From: Octopus bimaculoides | Lineage: Eukaryota | Length of the DNA: 64,000 bases | Reading direction: 5' to 3' | NCBI RefSeq assembly: GCF_001194135.2 | Contig: NC_068986.1 | Span: 79,828,046-79,892,045, forward strand | Shown here: positions 29,496 to 55,615 of the stretch, piece by piece | Numbering within the stretch: position 1 is the first letter of the stretch | Layout: each line of letters opens with the position of its first letter | Notes under the pieces: generated by a model | What the model was told of the DNA's origin: nothing | The model's input: only the letters and a program-made list of their open reading frames with translations | Database searches by the model: none | Position numbers and translations under genes: made by a program

Positions 29496-29554
29496 ATGTT
29501 ATCCAAGTTTCTGGGTTGCAAATCCCTGTAACGATCCTCATCTTGTTTGTTGTT

Positions 29555-29600
29555 AACACAACATTTCGGCTGATACACCCTCCAGCCTTCATCAGGTATC
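29555..29600 (-). ncRNA. Minimal type-I hammerhead motif, family A copy 1
   Basis: GATAC-CTGATGA-A-GGCTG gagggtgtat CAGCC-GAAA-TG-TT-GTGTT. The stem III palindrome has a C-to-T change relative to AACGTT in other copies. Confidence 0.75.
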
Positions 29601-29639
29601 TTGGGAAAATTTCTAAGGTATCTTTCGATGTTGTTGTTG

Positions 29640-29689
<50 letters not shown>

Positions 29690-29693
<4 letters not shown>

Positions 29694-29755
29694 TCTGGAA
29701 TCGAACTCGGAATCTTGGAGTTAGTAGCCCGCGCTCTTAAACACTACGTGGGCAA
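29690..29755 (-). promoter_or_regulatory. tRNA-like Pol III promoter module in the Penelope 3' region
   Basis: Box B GAGTTCGATTCC (plus 29697-29708). Box A is partly deleted here but intact (TGGCGTAGTGG) in the copies at 33.3 and 51.5 kb. Confidence 0.7.
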
Positions 29756-30466
29756 TTATGGAGTGAATTTTAGCGCTTATAAATCTAATATTTTCCCATC
29801 CATCCTTAATACCGGTTCCCATATGCTACTCATATCTGCACATGGTCTACTTAGGAGGTTGTTGTGTCCTCGCATATGTGCTGCTTCTTTTTCGTATTTT
29901 CCAGTGGTGTTCTCTGCCTAATATATTAACTTCATCCCACGGGGGAGGTGTCTCCATTTTCCATACACGATCAGCTATACCCGATTTATCAATATCTCCT
30001 CAAGTCACAGCTTTGCAATACTTGTCTACCCTTATTTTGAGGGGGCGACATGTTTCGCCTCTGTATAACCTACCACAGCTGCATGGGATAGCGTACACGC
30101 AGTCTTTGGTTATATTCTCTTCTATTGGCGGTTTTACTCGAAGGAGGTATTTGCGAAGTGTTGTATTGCTCTTGAATACTACCCTGATGTCATATCTTTT
30201 GTATCTTTTCGGAGAGGCCTTTCACATAGGGTAGACAGACTGGACAGTTTACTGGTTTCATCCTCTCTCTTTTCTTCATAACTGGAGTGGATAGTATGTT
30301 TTTGGAGTAGTTGTTGCTTAATAGATTGTTATTGAGCTTGTGAATAACGATCGCTCCTTATATTCTTTGCTCGATGTAAATAATGTGAATAATGGACTCT
30401 CGGATAGATCTTAATTACCGGTTGTTCTTTACTTGAAAGCAGGCAATTACAAATCACCAAATATTT

Positions 30467-30599
30467 CAAGTAGTGCCTTCTCCTGTGACTCAAAGAGACA
30501 ATACGCTCTTTAGAATGCGAGCTGTACCAAACAATGCTGTCTTCTGGATCACTTCGAGCCTGACAGCAGCTCCAATATTCTTAATATATTTCCCAAAGC

Positions 30600-30602
<3 letters not shown>
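30467..30602 (-). mobile_element. R4/Dong-like LINE extreme 3' fragment
   Basis: GFGKYIKNIGAAVRLEVIQKTALFGTARILKSVLSL*. Confidence 0.8.
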
Positions 30603-30647
<45 letters not shown>

Positions 30648-30651
30648 CTAT

Positions 30652-31499: not shown

Positions 31500-32200
31500 A
31501 GTCTCATCTATTTTTCCTTCCTTCAAAGTTATGTAACGTTGTTTTTGCCTCCCTTAGAGCGGCATACTAAGTATGTCGGAGTTGTTGATGCACAGGGGCA
31601 GCAACATTTAAATATATTCCAGGACAGTGAACAAGTGGTGACCGCTTCTATAATTTGTCTCTTTCAAGTAGATACATTCTTGGGTCAAGTGTTCACTACT
31701 ACTCTAATTTTCACTTAAGCTTTCTATTCAGAACTTGTTTTTGAGGAAGGAAAGTAACGTTCGTAGAAAAACGCTGGGTGTCAGTAAGAATAAACTGGTT
31801 GGCACGTTACAGAGATTTACAACCCAGAAACTTGGACAACATTAGAAAATCCTGGCCTAGCAGTACTGATAAAGACTACAGACACAGAAATGTTATCAAA
31901 CGAACTTGCTCTAAATGTGTGCAAAGCAGCGAAGCCCTTCTGTACGCATTTGTTCAGTGTCCCGGTACTGTTGAACTGTGGAATTGTCGATCAACTTTTG
32001 TCGCGCATAGGATGGATCTGGCTATCAGAATGTTAATCGTGATGATTATCAGCCGGCTAAATTTCTTCCGAGAAAAGCAGGCAGTTCTCTTCTATCTGTT
32101 GGTTATGACGAAAGAGGTGATATAATGGACATAACTGAAAAGAATAACGAGAGACACATTCCTCCTCGGCTAAACCCTCGTTGACTTCTTAAAATTCTTC
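31500..32200 (+). mobile_element. Tx1/L1-group LINE ORF2 C-terminal remnant
   Basis: QPRNLDNIRKS...RTCSKCVQSSEALLYAFVQCPGTVELW...QAVLFYLLVMTKEVI resembles the Tx1 Cys-rich C-terminus. Confidence 0.65.
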
Positions 32201-32695: not shown

Positions 32696-33050
32696 GATGC
32701 TGAGCTGGCAGAATCGTTAGCACGCCGGGCGAAATGCTTAGCGATATTTCGTCTGTCGATAGGTTCTGAGTTCTAATTCCACCTAGGTCGATTTTGCCTT
32801 TCATCCTTTCAGGGTCGATAAAATATGTACTAGTTCAACACTGGAATCAATTTAATCGACTAACCTCACACCCAAAATTTCAGGCCTTGTGCCTGTAGTA
32901 AAAAGGCTTATTTAAGGTGGAGGGGAAACTAGCAGAGTATTTATCGCGCTGGACAAAATGCTTAACGGCATTCCTCCCGAGTTTACGTTCTGAGTTCAAA
33001 TGCCGCTGAGGTCGACTTTGCATTTCATCATTCGAGTTCAATAAAATAAG
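32696..33050 (+). mobile_element. Two tandem SINE family 1 copies
   Basis: Heads at about 32696 and 32916, both with box A/B; the second is truncated by the tRNA-HHR element. Confidence 0.85.
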
Positions 33051-33052
33051 TA

Positions 33053-33450
33053 CCATTATTTACATTTAACGGATATTTGTCCTCATCTTGTTTGTTGTTA
33101 ACACGTTTCGGTTGATATACCCGCCAACCTTCGTCAGGTGTCTTGGGGAAATTTCGAACCTGGGTTCTTATTCCCAAGGTATTTTTCGATGTTATTATTT
33201 TTATTATTATCATTCTTCTTATTATTATTATCATTATTATTATTATTATTATTCAGGTCGCTGCATGGAATCGAACTCGGAATCTTGAGGTTAGTAGCCC
33301 GCGCTCTTAACCACTACGCCATATGCCCGTGGGCATACGGTGTAGTGATATATCAGCCGAAACGTTGTGTTAACAACAAACAAGATGAGGACAAATATTC
33401 GTGAATAGTAAATAATGTTCATAATTCCTCATCTCTTAAATATAGAACTG
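33053..33450 (-). mobile_element. ORF-free tRNA-(AAT)n-hammerhead element (family A copy 2) with an inverted second arm
   Basis: Box A at 33311-33321, box B at 33267-33278, (AAT)n, HHR at 33100-33142; inverted partial HHR and tail at about 33348-33450. Confidence 0.88.
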
Positions 33451-33724
33451 AAATAAGTACCAGTTGAGTACTAAAGTCGAAATAATTGACTTATTCCCTC
33501 CCCGAAATCGCTGGCCTTGGGCAAAACTTTGAAGCCGTTATGATTCTTTTCTTTTTTTTTTTTCTTTTTCATATGCTGCCGAGGTCGACTTTGCCTTTCA
33601 TCCATTCAAAATCAATGAAAGAAGGACCAGTGAAGCACCGGTGTCGATGTAATCGACTAGCTCCCTTCCACAAAATTTCAGGCTTTGTACCAGTTGTAGT
33701 AAAGATTATAATTATTATTAAATC

Positions 33725-49838: not shown

Positions 49839-51273
49839 TGTACGTGCGTATGTATGTTTGTATGTATGTTTCTCTTTGAAAATTTTAAAAATTCTTCGCA
49901 GACTTCAAGCTGCTAATTAGAAAGACTTGATTCTTTCTCTGAGCCAAGACAAATTCCAAAGATTATGAATATGTGACAGTAATTTAGTGTTTACATACGT
50001 ATAAGTGTGTGGATAAATATGCTTGCATTCAGATAATAGCTATGTATGTTTCTTTAGTATACGAGTGTGTATAATTACTCTTTAGAAATGCCCGGGTAGC
50101 ATGTACACAAAATAATTGTCGTAGAATAGTGTTTTAGAAATAACACAGATTTCATCAAAGATTAATGTTAGAATCTGAAGAGCTAGACGAAGTGGCACAT
50201 TGTGTCATGTTTCATCTCTTTACGTCCTGATTTCGTGTCTGTGTGTCATCGGTCATTTCAGTGCACACAAGCCTCATAACTTCTACTAATCTGTGGGCGT
50301 ATACCAAAGTCAACAAATGCTATTAAACGATACAATTAATATTGTTGTATCTTGAGAGAGTCATTATGCCAATAATGATAAAGATTTGTTTCAACACACT
50401 AGTTCAAGTCAAGAATCCTGTAAATCAAATACGAAAATAAAGATACAATTAATAAATATACATAAATTTTAAAAAGTAAATTAATACAGATATATAAATA
50501 TACAATAAATATACATATAATTTANNNNNNNNNNNNNNNNNNNNNNNNNNNNNNNNNNNNNNNNNNNNNNNNNNNNNNNNNNNNNNNNNNNNNNNNNNNN
50601 NNNNNNNNNNNNNNNNNNNNNNNNNNNNNNNNNNNNNNNNNNNNNNNNNNNNNNNNNNNNNNNNNNNNNNNNNNTGTATATATATATATACATTAGAGGA
50701 AAATGACATCAAAAACCAAAGCAGGATGAGTATCTCAGGCCATTTATAATAATTTAATTAGGGTAAGGTTAATTTGAAGTCTTACAGCTATTTCTGGGAT
50801 ATTCCAAGTGATAGGCTCGCATGTCCGTACACTGGGTATTCCGTCATCAGAGACGAAGTATGTTTGAAAGTTCTCGACAGGGAAATTTAGTTTATAAGGA
50901 ATAGAATAGAAGAATAAGGAGTAAATTAAATGTAAGATTACATATAGGATAATAAAAGTTCACAGTTCATCTTTTCCCAGTCTGTTTTCATATATCTACT
51001 TTTATTCTTTATTCATCTATTTTATTCCTTATAAACTGTAAATTTCCCTGTCTAGAGCTTTCATACATACTCATTTTTTTTCTGATGACTGAATACCTAG
51101 CGTACGGACATGCTAGCCTATCACTTAGGATATCCCAGAAATACCTGTAAGACTTCAAATTAACCTTACCCTAATTAAATTATTATAAATGATACAGTTC
51201 GATATTTAAGAGATGAGGTATTATGTACATTATTTATACTTCACGGATATTTGTCCTCATCTTGTTTGTTGTT

Positions 51274-51319
51274 AACACAACGTTTCGGCTGATATATTCT
51301 CCAGCCTTCATTAGGTGTC
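51274..51319 (-). ncRNA. Hammerhead motif family A with G5A core mutation (probably inactive)
   Basis: GACAC-CTAATGA-A-GGCTG gagaatatat CAGCC-GAAA-CG-TT-GTGTT. Confidence 0.7.
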
Positions 51320-51366
51320 TTGGAGAAATTTCGAACCTGAGTTCTCATTCCTCAGGTATTTTTCTA

Positions 51367-51434
<68 letters not shown>

Positions 51435-51507
51435 TCACTGCCAGAAATCGAACTCGGAATCTTGGGGTTAATAGCCCGCACTTTAACCACTACGCCATAT
51501 GCTCATG

Positions 51508-51553
51508 GGCACCTGATGAAGGCTGGAGGGTAAATCAGCTGAAACGTTGTGTG
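51508..51553 (+). ncRNA. Hammerhead motif family A with intact core, in the inverted arm
   Basis: GGCAC-CTGATGA-A-GGCTG gagggtaaat CAGCT-GAAA-CG-TT-GTGTG; AACGTT palindrome; predicted cut 3' of 51548 (NUU triplet). Confidence 0.8.
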
Positions 51554-53295
51554 AACAACAAACAAGATGAGGACAAATATCCATCAAATGTAAATAATGT
51601 AAACAATATTATAAATGACTTGAGATACTCGTACTGCCTTGGTTTTTGATGTCCTTTTCCTCTAATGCAAACCTGCTAACACGGAAGCGTAAAATGGATC
51701 CCTAGCTCCAGCCGCAACTGTGAACTTGGAACCTAATGGATGACCAATTCAAGTACTTACTCAGCGTACCTATTTGTTTAGTTCACCAGTGTACTAAAGC
51801 CCTCATATCCTCAATATATATACACAAACACACACACACATACACACATACGCGAAGGAATGCTGAAAAGTTCCTGGCTTTGGGTAAAAGAAAATACGGG
51901 AGGATCAGTTAATTATGATTTTGTGCAACATATTCCTTTCTCAGATATATACACTTACTGCAGCGGCTCTTCAGTAAAAGAATTCCGGAGGTTGGGACAC
52001 CAACCAGGCCTTTCGCGAAACCCTTAAAGCCAAGAACTTTTCAACACCCCCTTGTGTGTGTGTGTGTGTGTCTGTGTCTGTGTGTGTAAGTGGGTGGGTG
52101 TGTGTATAGATATCCATACATACATCTACAAGACTATTTGAAACATCCCACACTGGGAAGTGGTTAGAAAATCTTTTTTTCTGTTGGGACCATAAATATA
52201 TTCTGAAAAAAAAAAGCAATAATTGTCTTTAAAATTATATGGATTCCTTATGAGTTTGCATACAGCCAATTTTTGAAGAGTTTGAAGTGTAGTCGTTTAG
52301 TATATTACAGGAGTTAATTTGATCGAACTAGGAATGATAAAGATACTTTCGAGACTGGCTGAATTGATTTGAACTTAGAAACTATAGGGAGAAAACTAAA
52401 TTTGGTTAAGTATTTCATTTGGCTCTTCTCTGTGTCAACCCTCCTAAGGCATTATTTATTTCAAAAACATGCATACAGACACGCACAAACATATAAACAT
52501 GTATATTATATATGGATATATATTTATATGTTATATATGTGTGTGTGTTTGTGAAGTGTCTGTGTATGTATGTATGTATGTATGTATGTATGTATGCATC
52601 CATGCATGTTTGATAACTTAGGCTTTACCAATTATTGGCTCAGATCACCGCAGATTTCAAGAAGAATCACAAACTAGATATACAGGACTGTAAAGTGATT
52701 GGCAAAGAGAAATAGAATTCTGTAAAGACTAGAATATATAACCAAGAGACGCTATCCAGATTGAAACAAACAGTTAAGTTAGAGCATTCAAGAGATTAAT
52801 GTATATATATTGAACAATAAGACTGAAATAGTCATTCTATGTTACCATTAAATTTTAGCAATCGAATGAGTGAACAAAGACAATTTTTGTGTCATACTAT
52901 AAGCACAATCTGGTCAGAAAATATTTATTAAACAATCGGCAAATATTTATTAAAACAATTTTTCTTAATATTCTCCTACGTTTTTGTAAATATTTGCGAT
53001 ATAATCACGTCTGTATTGACATTAATATCATTATTCTATCGATCGCTTAATCATTTGCGTTATCAACACAGCCTTTGTTTTAAAACCTAATGTTTATTTA
53101 ACAGTAAAGATATAGCTGTGCTTGCACGTATCTATGTAGATAGCTACAGAATTATATTTATACATAAATGAGTGTATGCGTGTATCGAGTGACCTTTCTT
53201 TAGATGTGATCTAGGATGTCTGTATTTGTAAAAACAGCACAGCGCTATTTCAGATGCAGGAGGGTGCAGTACCATACTGTGCGTATGCATATCTG

Positions 53296-55456: not shown

Positions 55457-55539
55457 TATGGAAATATTTTATTCTCAAACGCATAATAATAATGCTGAAT
55501 AGCATGGAACATACTTATATTGCAGAAAAATTTGTTAGC

Positions 55540-55615
55540 GGCCAGCCATGAGACTCGAACTCACATCTCTGTGATTACCAGCCATAGTGCTTTGCCTCTT
55601 TAAGCTAAACTGCCC
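55540..55615 (-). pseudogene. tRNA-Thr(GGT)-like pseudo-tRNA / SINE head
   Basis: GGGCAGT TA GCTT aaagaggca AAGC A C TATGG CTGGTAA TCACA GAGAT GTGAG TTCGAGT CTCAT GGCTGGCC folds as a cloverleaf with mismatches in the acceptor and anticodon stems. Its 3' half plus flank is repeated inverted at 55709-55842. Confidence 0.65.

Follow-up and report, generated by a model that had tools for sequence, protein, structure and literature searches.

Does the terminal repeat of an octopus Penelope-like element (PLE) contain a tRNA-gene-type promoter, and could such a promoter turn the repeat into a source of short, ribozyme-bearing insertions? The question is raised by a locus at 29.5 kb in a 64,000-nucleotide (nt) stretch of the Octopus bimaculoides genome (NCBI RefSeq assembly GCF_001194135.2, contig NC_068986.1, positions 79,828,046 to 79,892,045 of the forward strand), here called the window, whose coordinates are used below. 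The window (32% G+C) is part of a gapped scaffold with 21 runs of N, none of them near the three copies considered here: w29 (the 29.5 kb copy), w33 (33.3 kb) and w51 (51.5 kb). The first of these, w29, is the 3' portion of a dead, 5'-truncated octopus PLE. Its features are as follows.

30370-30414, minus strand: at the 5' end of the copy, what may remain of an inverted tail arm (ATTATTCACATTATTTACAT), a weak call from local alignment
29777-30345, minus strand: decayed, 5'-truncated PLE endonuclease (EN) pseudogene without the reverse transcriptase (RT) part, from translation
29761-29790, minus strand: conserved block TATTAGATTTATAAGcgcTAAAATTCACTC, including the TATA-like TTTATAAG and a TCACT motif, from cross-lineage alignment
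29690-29754, minus strand: tRNA-derived segment, opening with the short hairpin arm TGCCC, from box matches and alignments
29630-29689, minus strand: internal microsatellite, (AAT)15 then (AAC)5, read from the sequence
29550-29601, minus strand: predicted minimal type I hammerhead, from a descriptor match
29535-29559, minus strand: initial 25 nt of the PLE 3' terminal sequence (GTGTTAACAACAAACAAGATGAGGA), from comparison with other copies

The original prediction had placed an EN end, a tRNA-like module, an (AAT)n tract and a hammerhead on this strand, and all of them were found where it had put them. The 3' non-coding region of the element is the pseudo-long terminal repeat (pseudo-LTR, or pLTR), which is also placed before the open reading frame (ORF) by tandem arrangement. 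Its order is a TATA-like box over the stop codon, a short hairpin, the tRNA-derived segment, a spacer, the hammerhead and a terminal ~50-86 nt, this last part containing the two reverse-transcription entry sites (the PLE 'tail'). The EN frame of w29 (from ~30345 to the TAA at 29779-29777) is interrupted by three stops or frameshifts, with readable stretches CLPYVKGLSEKIQKI, VYAIPCSCGRLYRGETCRPLKIRVDK and SIWEPVL. The stop codon is contained within the TATA-like TTTATAAG (29783-29776), and the tgcccac onset of the module follows at 29754, 22 nt past the EN stop. Of the two promoter boxes claimed for this copy, box B is present (GAGTTCGATTCC, 29708-29697; four matches in the window vs 0.23 expected), whereas box A has lost half its length to an 11-nt deletion, leaving CGTAGTGT at 29748-29741, and is intact only in w33 and w51. 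A 28-nt spacer separates the microsatellite from the hammerhead, and the copy ends 25 nt beyond the cleavage site, sooner than other copies do. Over 29748-29535 it is 80-81% identical to the ORF-free copies. The ATTATTCACATTATTTACAT remnant aligns with the inverted arms of w33 and of an Octopus vulgaris locus at z = 3.2 and 5.2, respectively, values not above the best shuffle.

The ORF-module junction recurs in other copies. Octopus-lineage relatives were an O. vulgaris chromosome locus (L001) and a metagenome contig from another sample (L011); a second PLE lineage was represented by four loci (L002, L003, L004 and L005), all from ENA assembly ERZ21867824. L001 is 83.8% identical to window positions 30085-29668 over 438 nt, in an alignment that crosses the stop from EN to module without interruption; the 5' truncation point and flanks of L001 are unlike those of w29. 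L011 has an intact EN C-terminus and the same TTTATAA, followed by TCACTC, the TGCCTACGGGCA hairpin region, TGGCATAGTGG and GTTCAAATCC. The EN proteins of L002-L005 are 52-59% identical to the w29 fragment, and these loci have no SINEs (short interspersed elements) in common with the window; thus, we take them to come from another taxon. Past their stop codons lie the TTTATAAG..AAAATTCACTC block, a TGTCC..GGACA hairpin, box A as TAGCGTAACGG or TGGCACAGTGG, then GGTTCAATCC and, after ~150 nt, a CUGAAGA-type minimal hammerhead and AAUAACAAUAAAGAUGAAGACAAUAGUCC. L005 is a decayed pLTR-ORF-pLTR unit, with its 5' pLTR truncated inside the tRNA-like part and ~2.3 kb of N-terminal, RT and EN remnants between the pLTRs, ending in the stop and the 3' pLTR. 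The same order past the stop is therefore seen in three octopus-lineage copies (w29, L001, L011) and, in diverged form, in four of the second lineage, which bears out the claim that the module belongs to the PLE pLTR. On these comparisons it is well supported that the tRNA-derived module, spacer and hammerhead are an integral, inherited part of the PLE 3' region.

The layout that had been proposed included the (AAT)n tract, and this part holds for the octopus copies only: at the homologous place the second lineage has a short GAGTAATAATAC. As judged from the alignment, (AAT)n is a lineage-specific expansion of the GAGTAATAATAC stretch and not a conserved part. More distant PLEs (L007-L010) have no tRNA-like part downstream of the ORF; the module is thus confined to some PLE lineages.

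Several further observations concern the 3' regions of these relatives. In L004, boxes A and B of the tRNA-like segment are split apart by an insertion of 3.2 kb (6545-9790) that includes a weak zf-CCHC gene. A third PLE family in ERZ21867824 (L012, 6790-7090) combines an inverted arm with a solo hammerhead in direct orientation, CUGAAGA A GGCCA..UGGCC GAA ACGU A, with no tRNA-like part visible beside it and an RVT_1 gene on the other strand at 3768-5162. Between the stop and the TATA-like block, AATATGAGCNNAGGTAAAAA occurs in the second lineage only (L002-L006, e.g., L002 5545-5565) and includes a 5' splice-site-like AG/GTAAA. Introns are known within PLE pLTRs. An intron past the EN stop in the second lineage (from GAGCNNAGGTAAAAA) was considered, but no matching acceptor was found.

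The protein encoded upstream of the module is of PLE type. The EN fragment of w29 has 14 short homologues, the best at 56-72% identity and one from O. vulgaris. An RT followed by a C-terminal EN is seen in relatives, of which w29 retains the EN part only: L005 has the RT motifs MVSLDVVSLFTKVP, GLAMGS.LSP and RYIDDTF, then the EN, and homologues P0015 and P0016 have RVT_1 plus the EN part. In the protein alignment we recognize by eye the pattern VY.IPC.CG..Y.GET.R.L..R..EH, which resembles the GIY-YIG type, and one source labels homologue P0002 a GIY-YIG endonuclease. Pfam, NCBIfam and PDB sequence profile searches with the EN gave no matches. An AlphaFold model predicts a core (residues 70-140, predicted local distance difference test score ~90) with the order strand-strand-helix-helix-strand-helix, and Foldseek searches with this model returned weak GIY-YIG matches, T4 EndoII (probability 0.30) and I-TevI (target TM 0.47), all at E > 1. 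A query with RT plus EN for an intact, full-length octopus element returned ENA proteins of the second lineage only.

We identified intact A boxes in the ORF-free copies. Box A (TGGCGTAGTGG, at 33321-33311 and 51497-51487) matches TRGCNNAGTGG at 11 of 11 positions, and box B (AGTTCGATTCC) matches GGTTCGANNCC at 10 of 11, with 34 nt separating the two; the chance expectation of a composite A+B match is 0.34 per window. In a global alignment over its full length with the window's tRNA gene, which both ARAGORN and Rfam call, the 73-nt intact segment gives z = 7.2. Against a putative tRNA-Arg(ACG) sequence z = 9, and this is a lead only. Judging from these matches, the segment is tRNA-derived, and its source is probably tRNA-Arg. 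Run on eight modules, ARAGORN called nothing with its thresholds lowered as far as 85%; at 80% it made a single call, in L003, which could not be assigned. The minimum-free-energy folds do not look like a tRNA (one of four is more stable than its own shuffles), and in no lineage can the sequence form an acceptor, anticodon or T stem. Of the non-coding sequence, the TATA-like block is the best conserved between the two PLE lineages, with TTTATAA at 90-100% identity; box A (TRGYRTARYGGTTA) and GTTCRA are recognizable across both, the anticodon region cannot be aligned and the spacing from A to B ranges from 34 to 53 nt. Boxes conserved without a fold look like the pattern of a putative type 2 promoter with an upstream TATA-like element.

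Other tRNA-like and AAT-rich sequences were noted in the window. The only tRNA call is tRNA-Thr(GGT) at 55538-55615 on the minus strand (Rfam, 31.5 bits vs a threshold of 29), and from its odd sequence it may be a pseudo-tRNA or a SINE head, not a working gene. At 23675-23970 (plus strand) lies another tRNA-derived, SINE-like repeat with a box B-like GAGTTCAATTCC at 23729-23740; it adjoins long (CATA)n, (TA)n and (TG)n runs (23540-23675) and has two 80-83% identical copies in the O. vulgaris locus (L001 819-988 and 8885-9012). A long compound (AAT)n-(AAC)n-(ACC)n microsatellite at 5160-5320 (minus strand) stands without PLE or tRNA-like sequence; AAT-type runs abound in this genome independently of the element.

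The ribozyme has the form defined for PLE pLTRs as the minimal hammerhead ribozyme (min-HHR), the features of which are CUGANGA and GAA boxes, a short helix I, a helix II closed by G10.1-C11.1, one more nucleotide inserted between A9 and 10.1, the palindrome A15.1-N-N-U16.1 and an H17 that is not G (Cervera & de la Pena, 2014; PMC4209133). The general motif here comprises helix I (G)ACAC/GUGU(U), CUGAUGA with a single unpaired A after it, a 6-bp helix II GGCUGG/UCAGCC closed by G10.1-C11.1, GAA, the palindromic ACGU (15.1-16.1) and U17, past which cleavage is predicted. In w29 these are GAUAC/GUGUU, CUGAUGA (29595-29589), an unpaired A, GGCUGG..UCAGCC, GAA and AUGU, with U17 at 29560 and predicted cleavage between 29560 and 29559. 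A palindrome in stem III, as had been claimed, does exist, but the relevant one is the 4-nt A15.1-U16.1 block (ACGU, or AUGU in w29) and not the GTTAAC farther 3'. A descriptor search of the window and related loci gave 11 instances, with one spurious match in ~160 kb. All min-HHR features are found in w29, w51 (with G5 changed to A), the inverted arm of w51 and two O. vulgaris copies (L001a, L001b), and in CUGAAGA form in L003, L004 and L005. Over the 11 instances, 84.6% of cells are paired vs 15-53% with slid partners; helix II is 92% paired, with two compensatory pairs (C-G to U-A and U-A to C-G), and helix I 71%. From the descriptor features and context, we predict that this is a minimal PLE-type hammerhead. 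A start of the PLE ORF at the AUG within CUGAUGA, as in Anolis PAc, where the start codon is reportedly located at the ribozyme, was rejected because in every copy that frame stops after ~25 codons.

The ORF-free copies at 33.3 and 51.5 kb show how such sequences were inserted. Their features are as follows.

33054-33450, minus strand: ORF-free copy w33, from alignment, descriptor and target-site duplication
33450-33348, minus strand: inverted 5' arm of w33 with the tail, 103 nt, from alignment
33347-33312, minus strand: 36-nt palindrome of w33, from the sequence
33321-33311, 33278-33267 and 33253-33196, minus strand: box A, box B and AAT-rich run of w33, from motif matches
33143-33093, minus strand: predicted hammerhead of w33 with a 3-nt deletion at the cleavage site, from the descriptor
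33451-33460 and 33044-33053: 10-bp target-site duplication of w33, GTACTTATTT, from the flanks
51193-51606, minus strand: ORF-free copy w51, from alignment, descriptor and target-site duplication
51606-51510, minus strand: inverted 5' arm of w51, ~97 nt, reaching into the hammerhead, from alignment
51497-51487, 51455-51444 and 51430-51371, minus strand: box A, box B (one mismatch) and (AAT)20 of w51, from motif matches
51320-51269, minus strand: predicted 3' hammerhead of w51, G5 to A, from the descriptor
51227-51193, minus strand: 33-nt tail of w51, from alignment
51607-51618 and 51181-51192: 12-bp target-site duplication of w51, TCATTTATAATA, from the flanks

The pLTR bodies of these copies are ~290-320 nt long, non-coding and dispersed, and have the whole 3' region in common with the PLE. 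Both open with their own 3' end in inverted form. The terminal 33 nt (cataatacctcatctcttaaatatcgaactgta) stand at one end only: w51 has them at its 3' end, w33 and L001a in the inverted arm; the 3' end of w33, at 33054, is tailless. Of the tail, 26 nt are 100% identical between the octopus and second lineages, as expected for an enzyme entry site. The inverted arm of w51 creates a second complete hammerhead on the plus strand (51507-51558), ~190 bp from the other; the arm copy has an intact CUGAUGA and the 3' copy CUAAUGA. Dual min-HHRs on opposite strands, which this pair resembles, were noted in Schistosoma by Cervera & de la Pena (PMC4209133). No tandem hammerhead repeats were found, all copies being single, and the second hammerhead of w51 is the opposite-strand arm. 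A protein-database search via a spurious antisense ORF for more short copies gave no candidates.

The published insertion signature of PLEs combines a 5'-truncated copy in inverted orientation, a one-sided tail of 30-40 bp and a target-site duplication (PMC3846280, PMC8557442), and the Anolis PLE enzyme nicks and primes both strands and reverse transcribes from two adjacent internal sites (PMC11167929). Because the ORF-free copies have target-site duplications, inverted arms and a one-end tail, we infer that PLE machinery made them. It is well supported by this anatomy that they are full copies of the pLTR alone, inserted by the PLE enzyme. The same signature rules out miniature inverted-repeat transposable elements and SINEs dependent on long interspersed elements (LINEs). 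Nicking and priming of both strands of an AT-rich target would yield the 10-12 bp duplication, the inverted 5' arm and the tail at one end.

The surroundings of the copies also contain other repeats. The target of w33 is another short repeat (..tcgactttagtactcaactg then gtacttattt then tattgaactcgaatgatgaaatgcaaagtcgacctcagcgg.., with flanks at 32960-33043 and 33461-33500), which resembles a different, abundant SINE family. Upstream, w29 is adjoined by the terminus of another retroelement-like ORF (30430-30650, minus strand, ending in GAAVRLEVIQKTALFGTARILKSVLSL and a stop). A separate (AAT)15 run at 30601-30645, with no tRNA-like segment attached, precedes this ORF end. At the other side, the 38-nt cgttacagggatttgcaacccagaaacttggataacatc begins exactly at the w29 end (29496-29533, minus strand) and forms, with 31805-31842 (plus strand), an inverted pair 2.3 kb apart and 92% identical; the PLE fragment may sit within or beside another element.

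The 5' ends of the ORF-free copies bear on where their RNA template began. The direct body of w51 begins (G)TGCCCATGAGCATA, that of w33 begins with its 36-nt palindrome CACTACACCGTATGCCC-AC-GGGCATATGGCGTAGTG, and in L001b a much longer inverted arm joins the body at the same TATGCCC-AC-GGGCATA centre. This centre is position +1 of the tRNA-like part, 32-34 nt past the TATAAG of the TTTATAAG block, which is present in ORF-linked copies and absent from ORF-free ones. All octopus copies, including the ORF-linked ones, keep at least TGCCC/GGGCA, and the second lineage has TGTCC/GGACA, a compensatory difference. Palindromes at pLTR 5' ends and inverted junctions are known in PLEs and have been read as self-priming (PMC3846280). 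Since the palindrome position is constant in three copies, the template 5' end appears fixed at the tRNA-like +1. This suggests that the template was a discrete RNA starting at the head of the tRNA-derived segment, ~30 nt past the TATA-like box.

Which polymerase would make this RNA? Overall, we consider that the pLTR is best explained as a SINE-like unit transcribed by RNA polymerase III (Pol III), a reading for which we judge the chances to be evenly balanced. In this scheme, Pol III would transcribe pLTR RNA via the TATA-like box and the internal A and B boxes, so that the pLTR would be a SINE-like sub-genomic transcription unit of the PLE. The hammerhead of the monomer would stay uncleaved, leaving the entry sites attached to the body. 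Daughter copies would probably be poor sources of further copies, because the upstream TATA-like box is lost. In the best-preserved copies, the sequence between head and tail is free of T4 runs. The stronger form of the proposal, that the cephalopod PLE pLTR holds a complete tRNA-gene-type Pol III unit and that each pLTR yields a short, uncapped RNA, bearing a dormant hammerhead and the PLE entry sites for reverse transcription, for the PLE enzyme to copy into SINE-like insertions, we put forward only tentatively.

A number of results weigh against this explanation or are neutral to it. The fixed 5' end rests on three octopus ORF-free copies (two in the window and one complex in L001), and in the second lineage the ORF-free pieces are random 5' truncations, one starting inside the tRNA-like part (L005 4100-4340) and another consisting of the hammerhead only (L003 4128-4179). 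L013, a 5'-truncated copy from a protein cluster of eight members, lacks both the TATA block and the tRNA-like part through a deletion of the initial 190 nt of its untranslated region. The Rfam tRNA model gave no match at E <= 10 on a 101-nt target; since neither Rfam nor ARAGORN calls a tRNA, no tRNA fold has been retained, which leaves tRNA ancestry unaffected. Over the 11 hammerhead instances covariation is not above the shuffle control, and Rfam hammerhead models gave no match at the gathering score or at E <= 10 on 500-nt targets, a miss expected of a motif without a helix III hairpin. With targets of 101-152 nt at E <= 10, too, Rfam called no tRNA or hammerhead in any copy. Depletion of T runs was rejected as a sign of Pol III: it is not significant, ~1 T4 run being expected per copy. 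A TATA-like box ~30 nt upstream of the start would fit RNA polymerase II (Pol II) equally well, and ordinary Pol II-derived solo pLTRs would explain the ORF-free copies about as well.

The last two points lead to an account in terms of ordinary PLE biology, in which a fossil tRNA or SINE fragment sits in the ancestral pLTR, Pol II starts from the TATA-like box and the boxes have no Pol III role. The short copies would then be solo or inverted pLTR insertions, arising either by reverse transcription from the first entry site on a transcript initiated in the pLTR or through very extensive 5' truncation, of which the random truncations of the second lineage would be examples. PLEs of A. vaga show much of what this account needs, namely solo and inverted pLTRs, a 31-bp tail, 5' palindromes and a promoter of TATA box plus TCACT initiator, all without a tRNA part (PMC3846280). 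Animal genomes commonly contain PLE fragments with a single hammerhead (PMC4209133), and it is the TATA-like block that is best conserved, at a canonical distance from the ORF-free 5' ends. The difficulty is that boxes A and B are recognizable at 52-59% EN identity while the sequence and length between them vary, a pattern hard to expect of a neutral fossil, though pLTRs overall are under constraint. We regard this account as possible, short of probable.

Two other explanations concern the tRNA-like segment itself. It could act as an RNA signal, either as a substrate of RNase P or RNase Z that mimics a tRNA, or as a structure bound by a PLE protein. The 5' ends and inverted junctions lie at the tRNA-like +1, where RNase P would cut, and the hairpin TGYCC/GGRCA shows a compensatory C:G to T:A change between lineages; PLE inverted junctions would also leave a conserved hairpin (PMC3846280), however, and the unformable acceptor, anticodon and T stems, with ARAGORN, the Rfam model and the folds giving nothing tRNA-like, make such a role improbable. 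The segment could also be an independent tRNA-derived SINE that lies by chance beside a PLE fragment at this locus only, and the lack of an inverted arm between ORF and module in w29 is how a 5'-truncated SINE might look. That reading we consider refuted, with only the slightest residual chance, because L001 and L011 repeat the junction and L002-L005 have its homologue; the flanks and truncation points of these loci differ, which argues against segmental duplicates of one locus.

The transcription of PLEs is poorly understood, and so is the source of the orphan minimal hammerheads that animal genomes contain by the thousand; a tRNA-gene-like pLTR module offers a concrete, testable path from an autonomous PLE to a SINE-like parasite. 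If the Pol III reading is true, this would be the first case of a SINE partnered with a PLE, its promoter being located within the autonomous element, and would extend the LINE-SINE partnership model to a third class of retrotransposons. It would also account for part of the SINE load of octopus genomes and trace animal retrozymes and the Sm-alpha-type ribozyme SINEs of Schistosoma to a common origin in PLE pLTRs. Should the boxes be inert, the copies are still a clean example, of specialist interest, of PLE insertion anatomy, with two RT entry sites, both-strand priming and a palindrome at the template 5' end.

Much of what we describe is known from other PLEs. PLE pLTR hammerheads, tails and inverted arms have been described, and a pLTR origin of animal retrozymes has been proposed. 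With published pLTRs (PMC4209133, PMC3846280, PMC8557442, PMC11167929) the octopus and related elements share the C-terminal EN after the RT and the pLTR-ORF-pLTR unit (L005); in the hammerhead, an additional nucleotide following A9, a long helix II with G10.1-C11.1, a helix I of 4-5 bp and the palindrome ANNU; inverted 5' arms, a one-sided tail of ~33 nt, 10-12 bp duplications and AT-rich sites in the insertions; and the 5'-end palindrome, TATA-like box and opposite-strand hammerhead pairs 100-700 bp apart. A text search of these four papers found no mention of a tRNA-derived segment, A/B boxes or Pol III in a pLTR, and no SINE mobilized by Penelope was described in the literature searched, the repeat catalogues (Repbase, Dfam) lying outside that search.

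The original prediction took the combination of features to be undescribed. This does not hold for a Pol III promoter with a hammerhead as such: a review summarizing Ferbeyre et al. 1998 and Laha et al. 2000 describes the Schistosoma Sm-alpha and Sj-alpha elements as short, non-coding and SINE-like, with a Pol III-type promoter and a type I hammerhead (PMC6765202). For the same combination within an autonomous PLE we found no description. The likeness to Sm-alpha and Sj-alpha, by description only, is that of a short retroposon with such a promoter and ribozyme. By that account Sm-alpha has a canonical hammerhead, is often tandem and is not reported within an autonomous element, whereas the octopus module is joined to a PLE ORF, has a minimal PLE-type ribozyme and occurs as dispersed copies with PLE-type ends.

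Metazoan non-LTR retrozymes lack autonomy, are thought to be derived from pLTRs and to use PLE enzymes; promoters are not discussed in the retrozyme papers (PMC7229834; doi 10.64898/2026.07.22.740005). The octopus copies are like them in being non-autonomous, hammerhead-bearing sequences tied to PLE pLTRs and enzymes. Retrozymes form tandem arrays with a hammerhead per unit and act via circular RNAs, in contrast to the single, dispersed octopus copies with a tRNA-derived head. Octopus is said to have the tRNA-derived SINEs OK, OR1 and OR2, and LINE-SINE pairs sharing a 3' end were reportedly described by Ohshima & Okada in 1994 and 2005. A tRNA-derived A/B-box head joined to the 3' end of an RT-supplying partner is the likeness with such pairs, but the partner here would be a PLE and the head lies inside the autonomous element itself. 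OR2 is a CORE-SINE (PMC4758252), and is thus different from the short copies, which could conceivably correspond to the OR1 family. Cassandra, Helenus and Ajax are LTR retrotransposons that lack autonomy and whose LTRs include 5S- or tRNA-like sequences (PMC10886601), and so also have a Pol III-promoter-like sequence, derived from a small-RNA gene, in a terminal repeat. These are LTR elements, non-autonomous only and without a ribozyme, whereas the octopus repeat is that of a PLE and is found on ORF-bearing copies. Unlike the PLEs described in the papers searched, the octopus element has a tRNA-derived segment that is kept in two lineages and heads the ORF-free copies.

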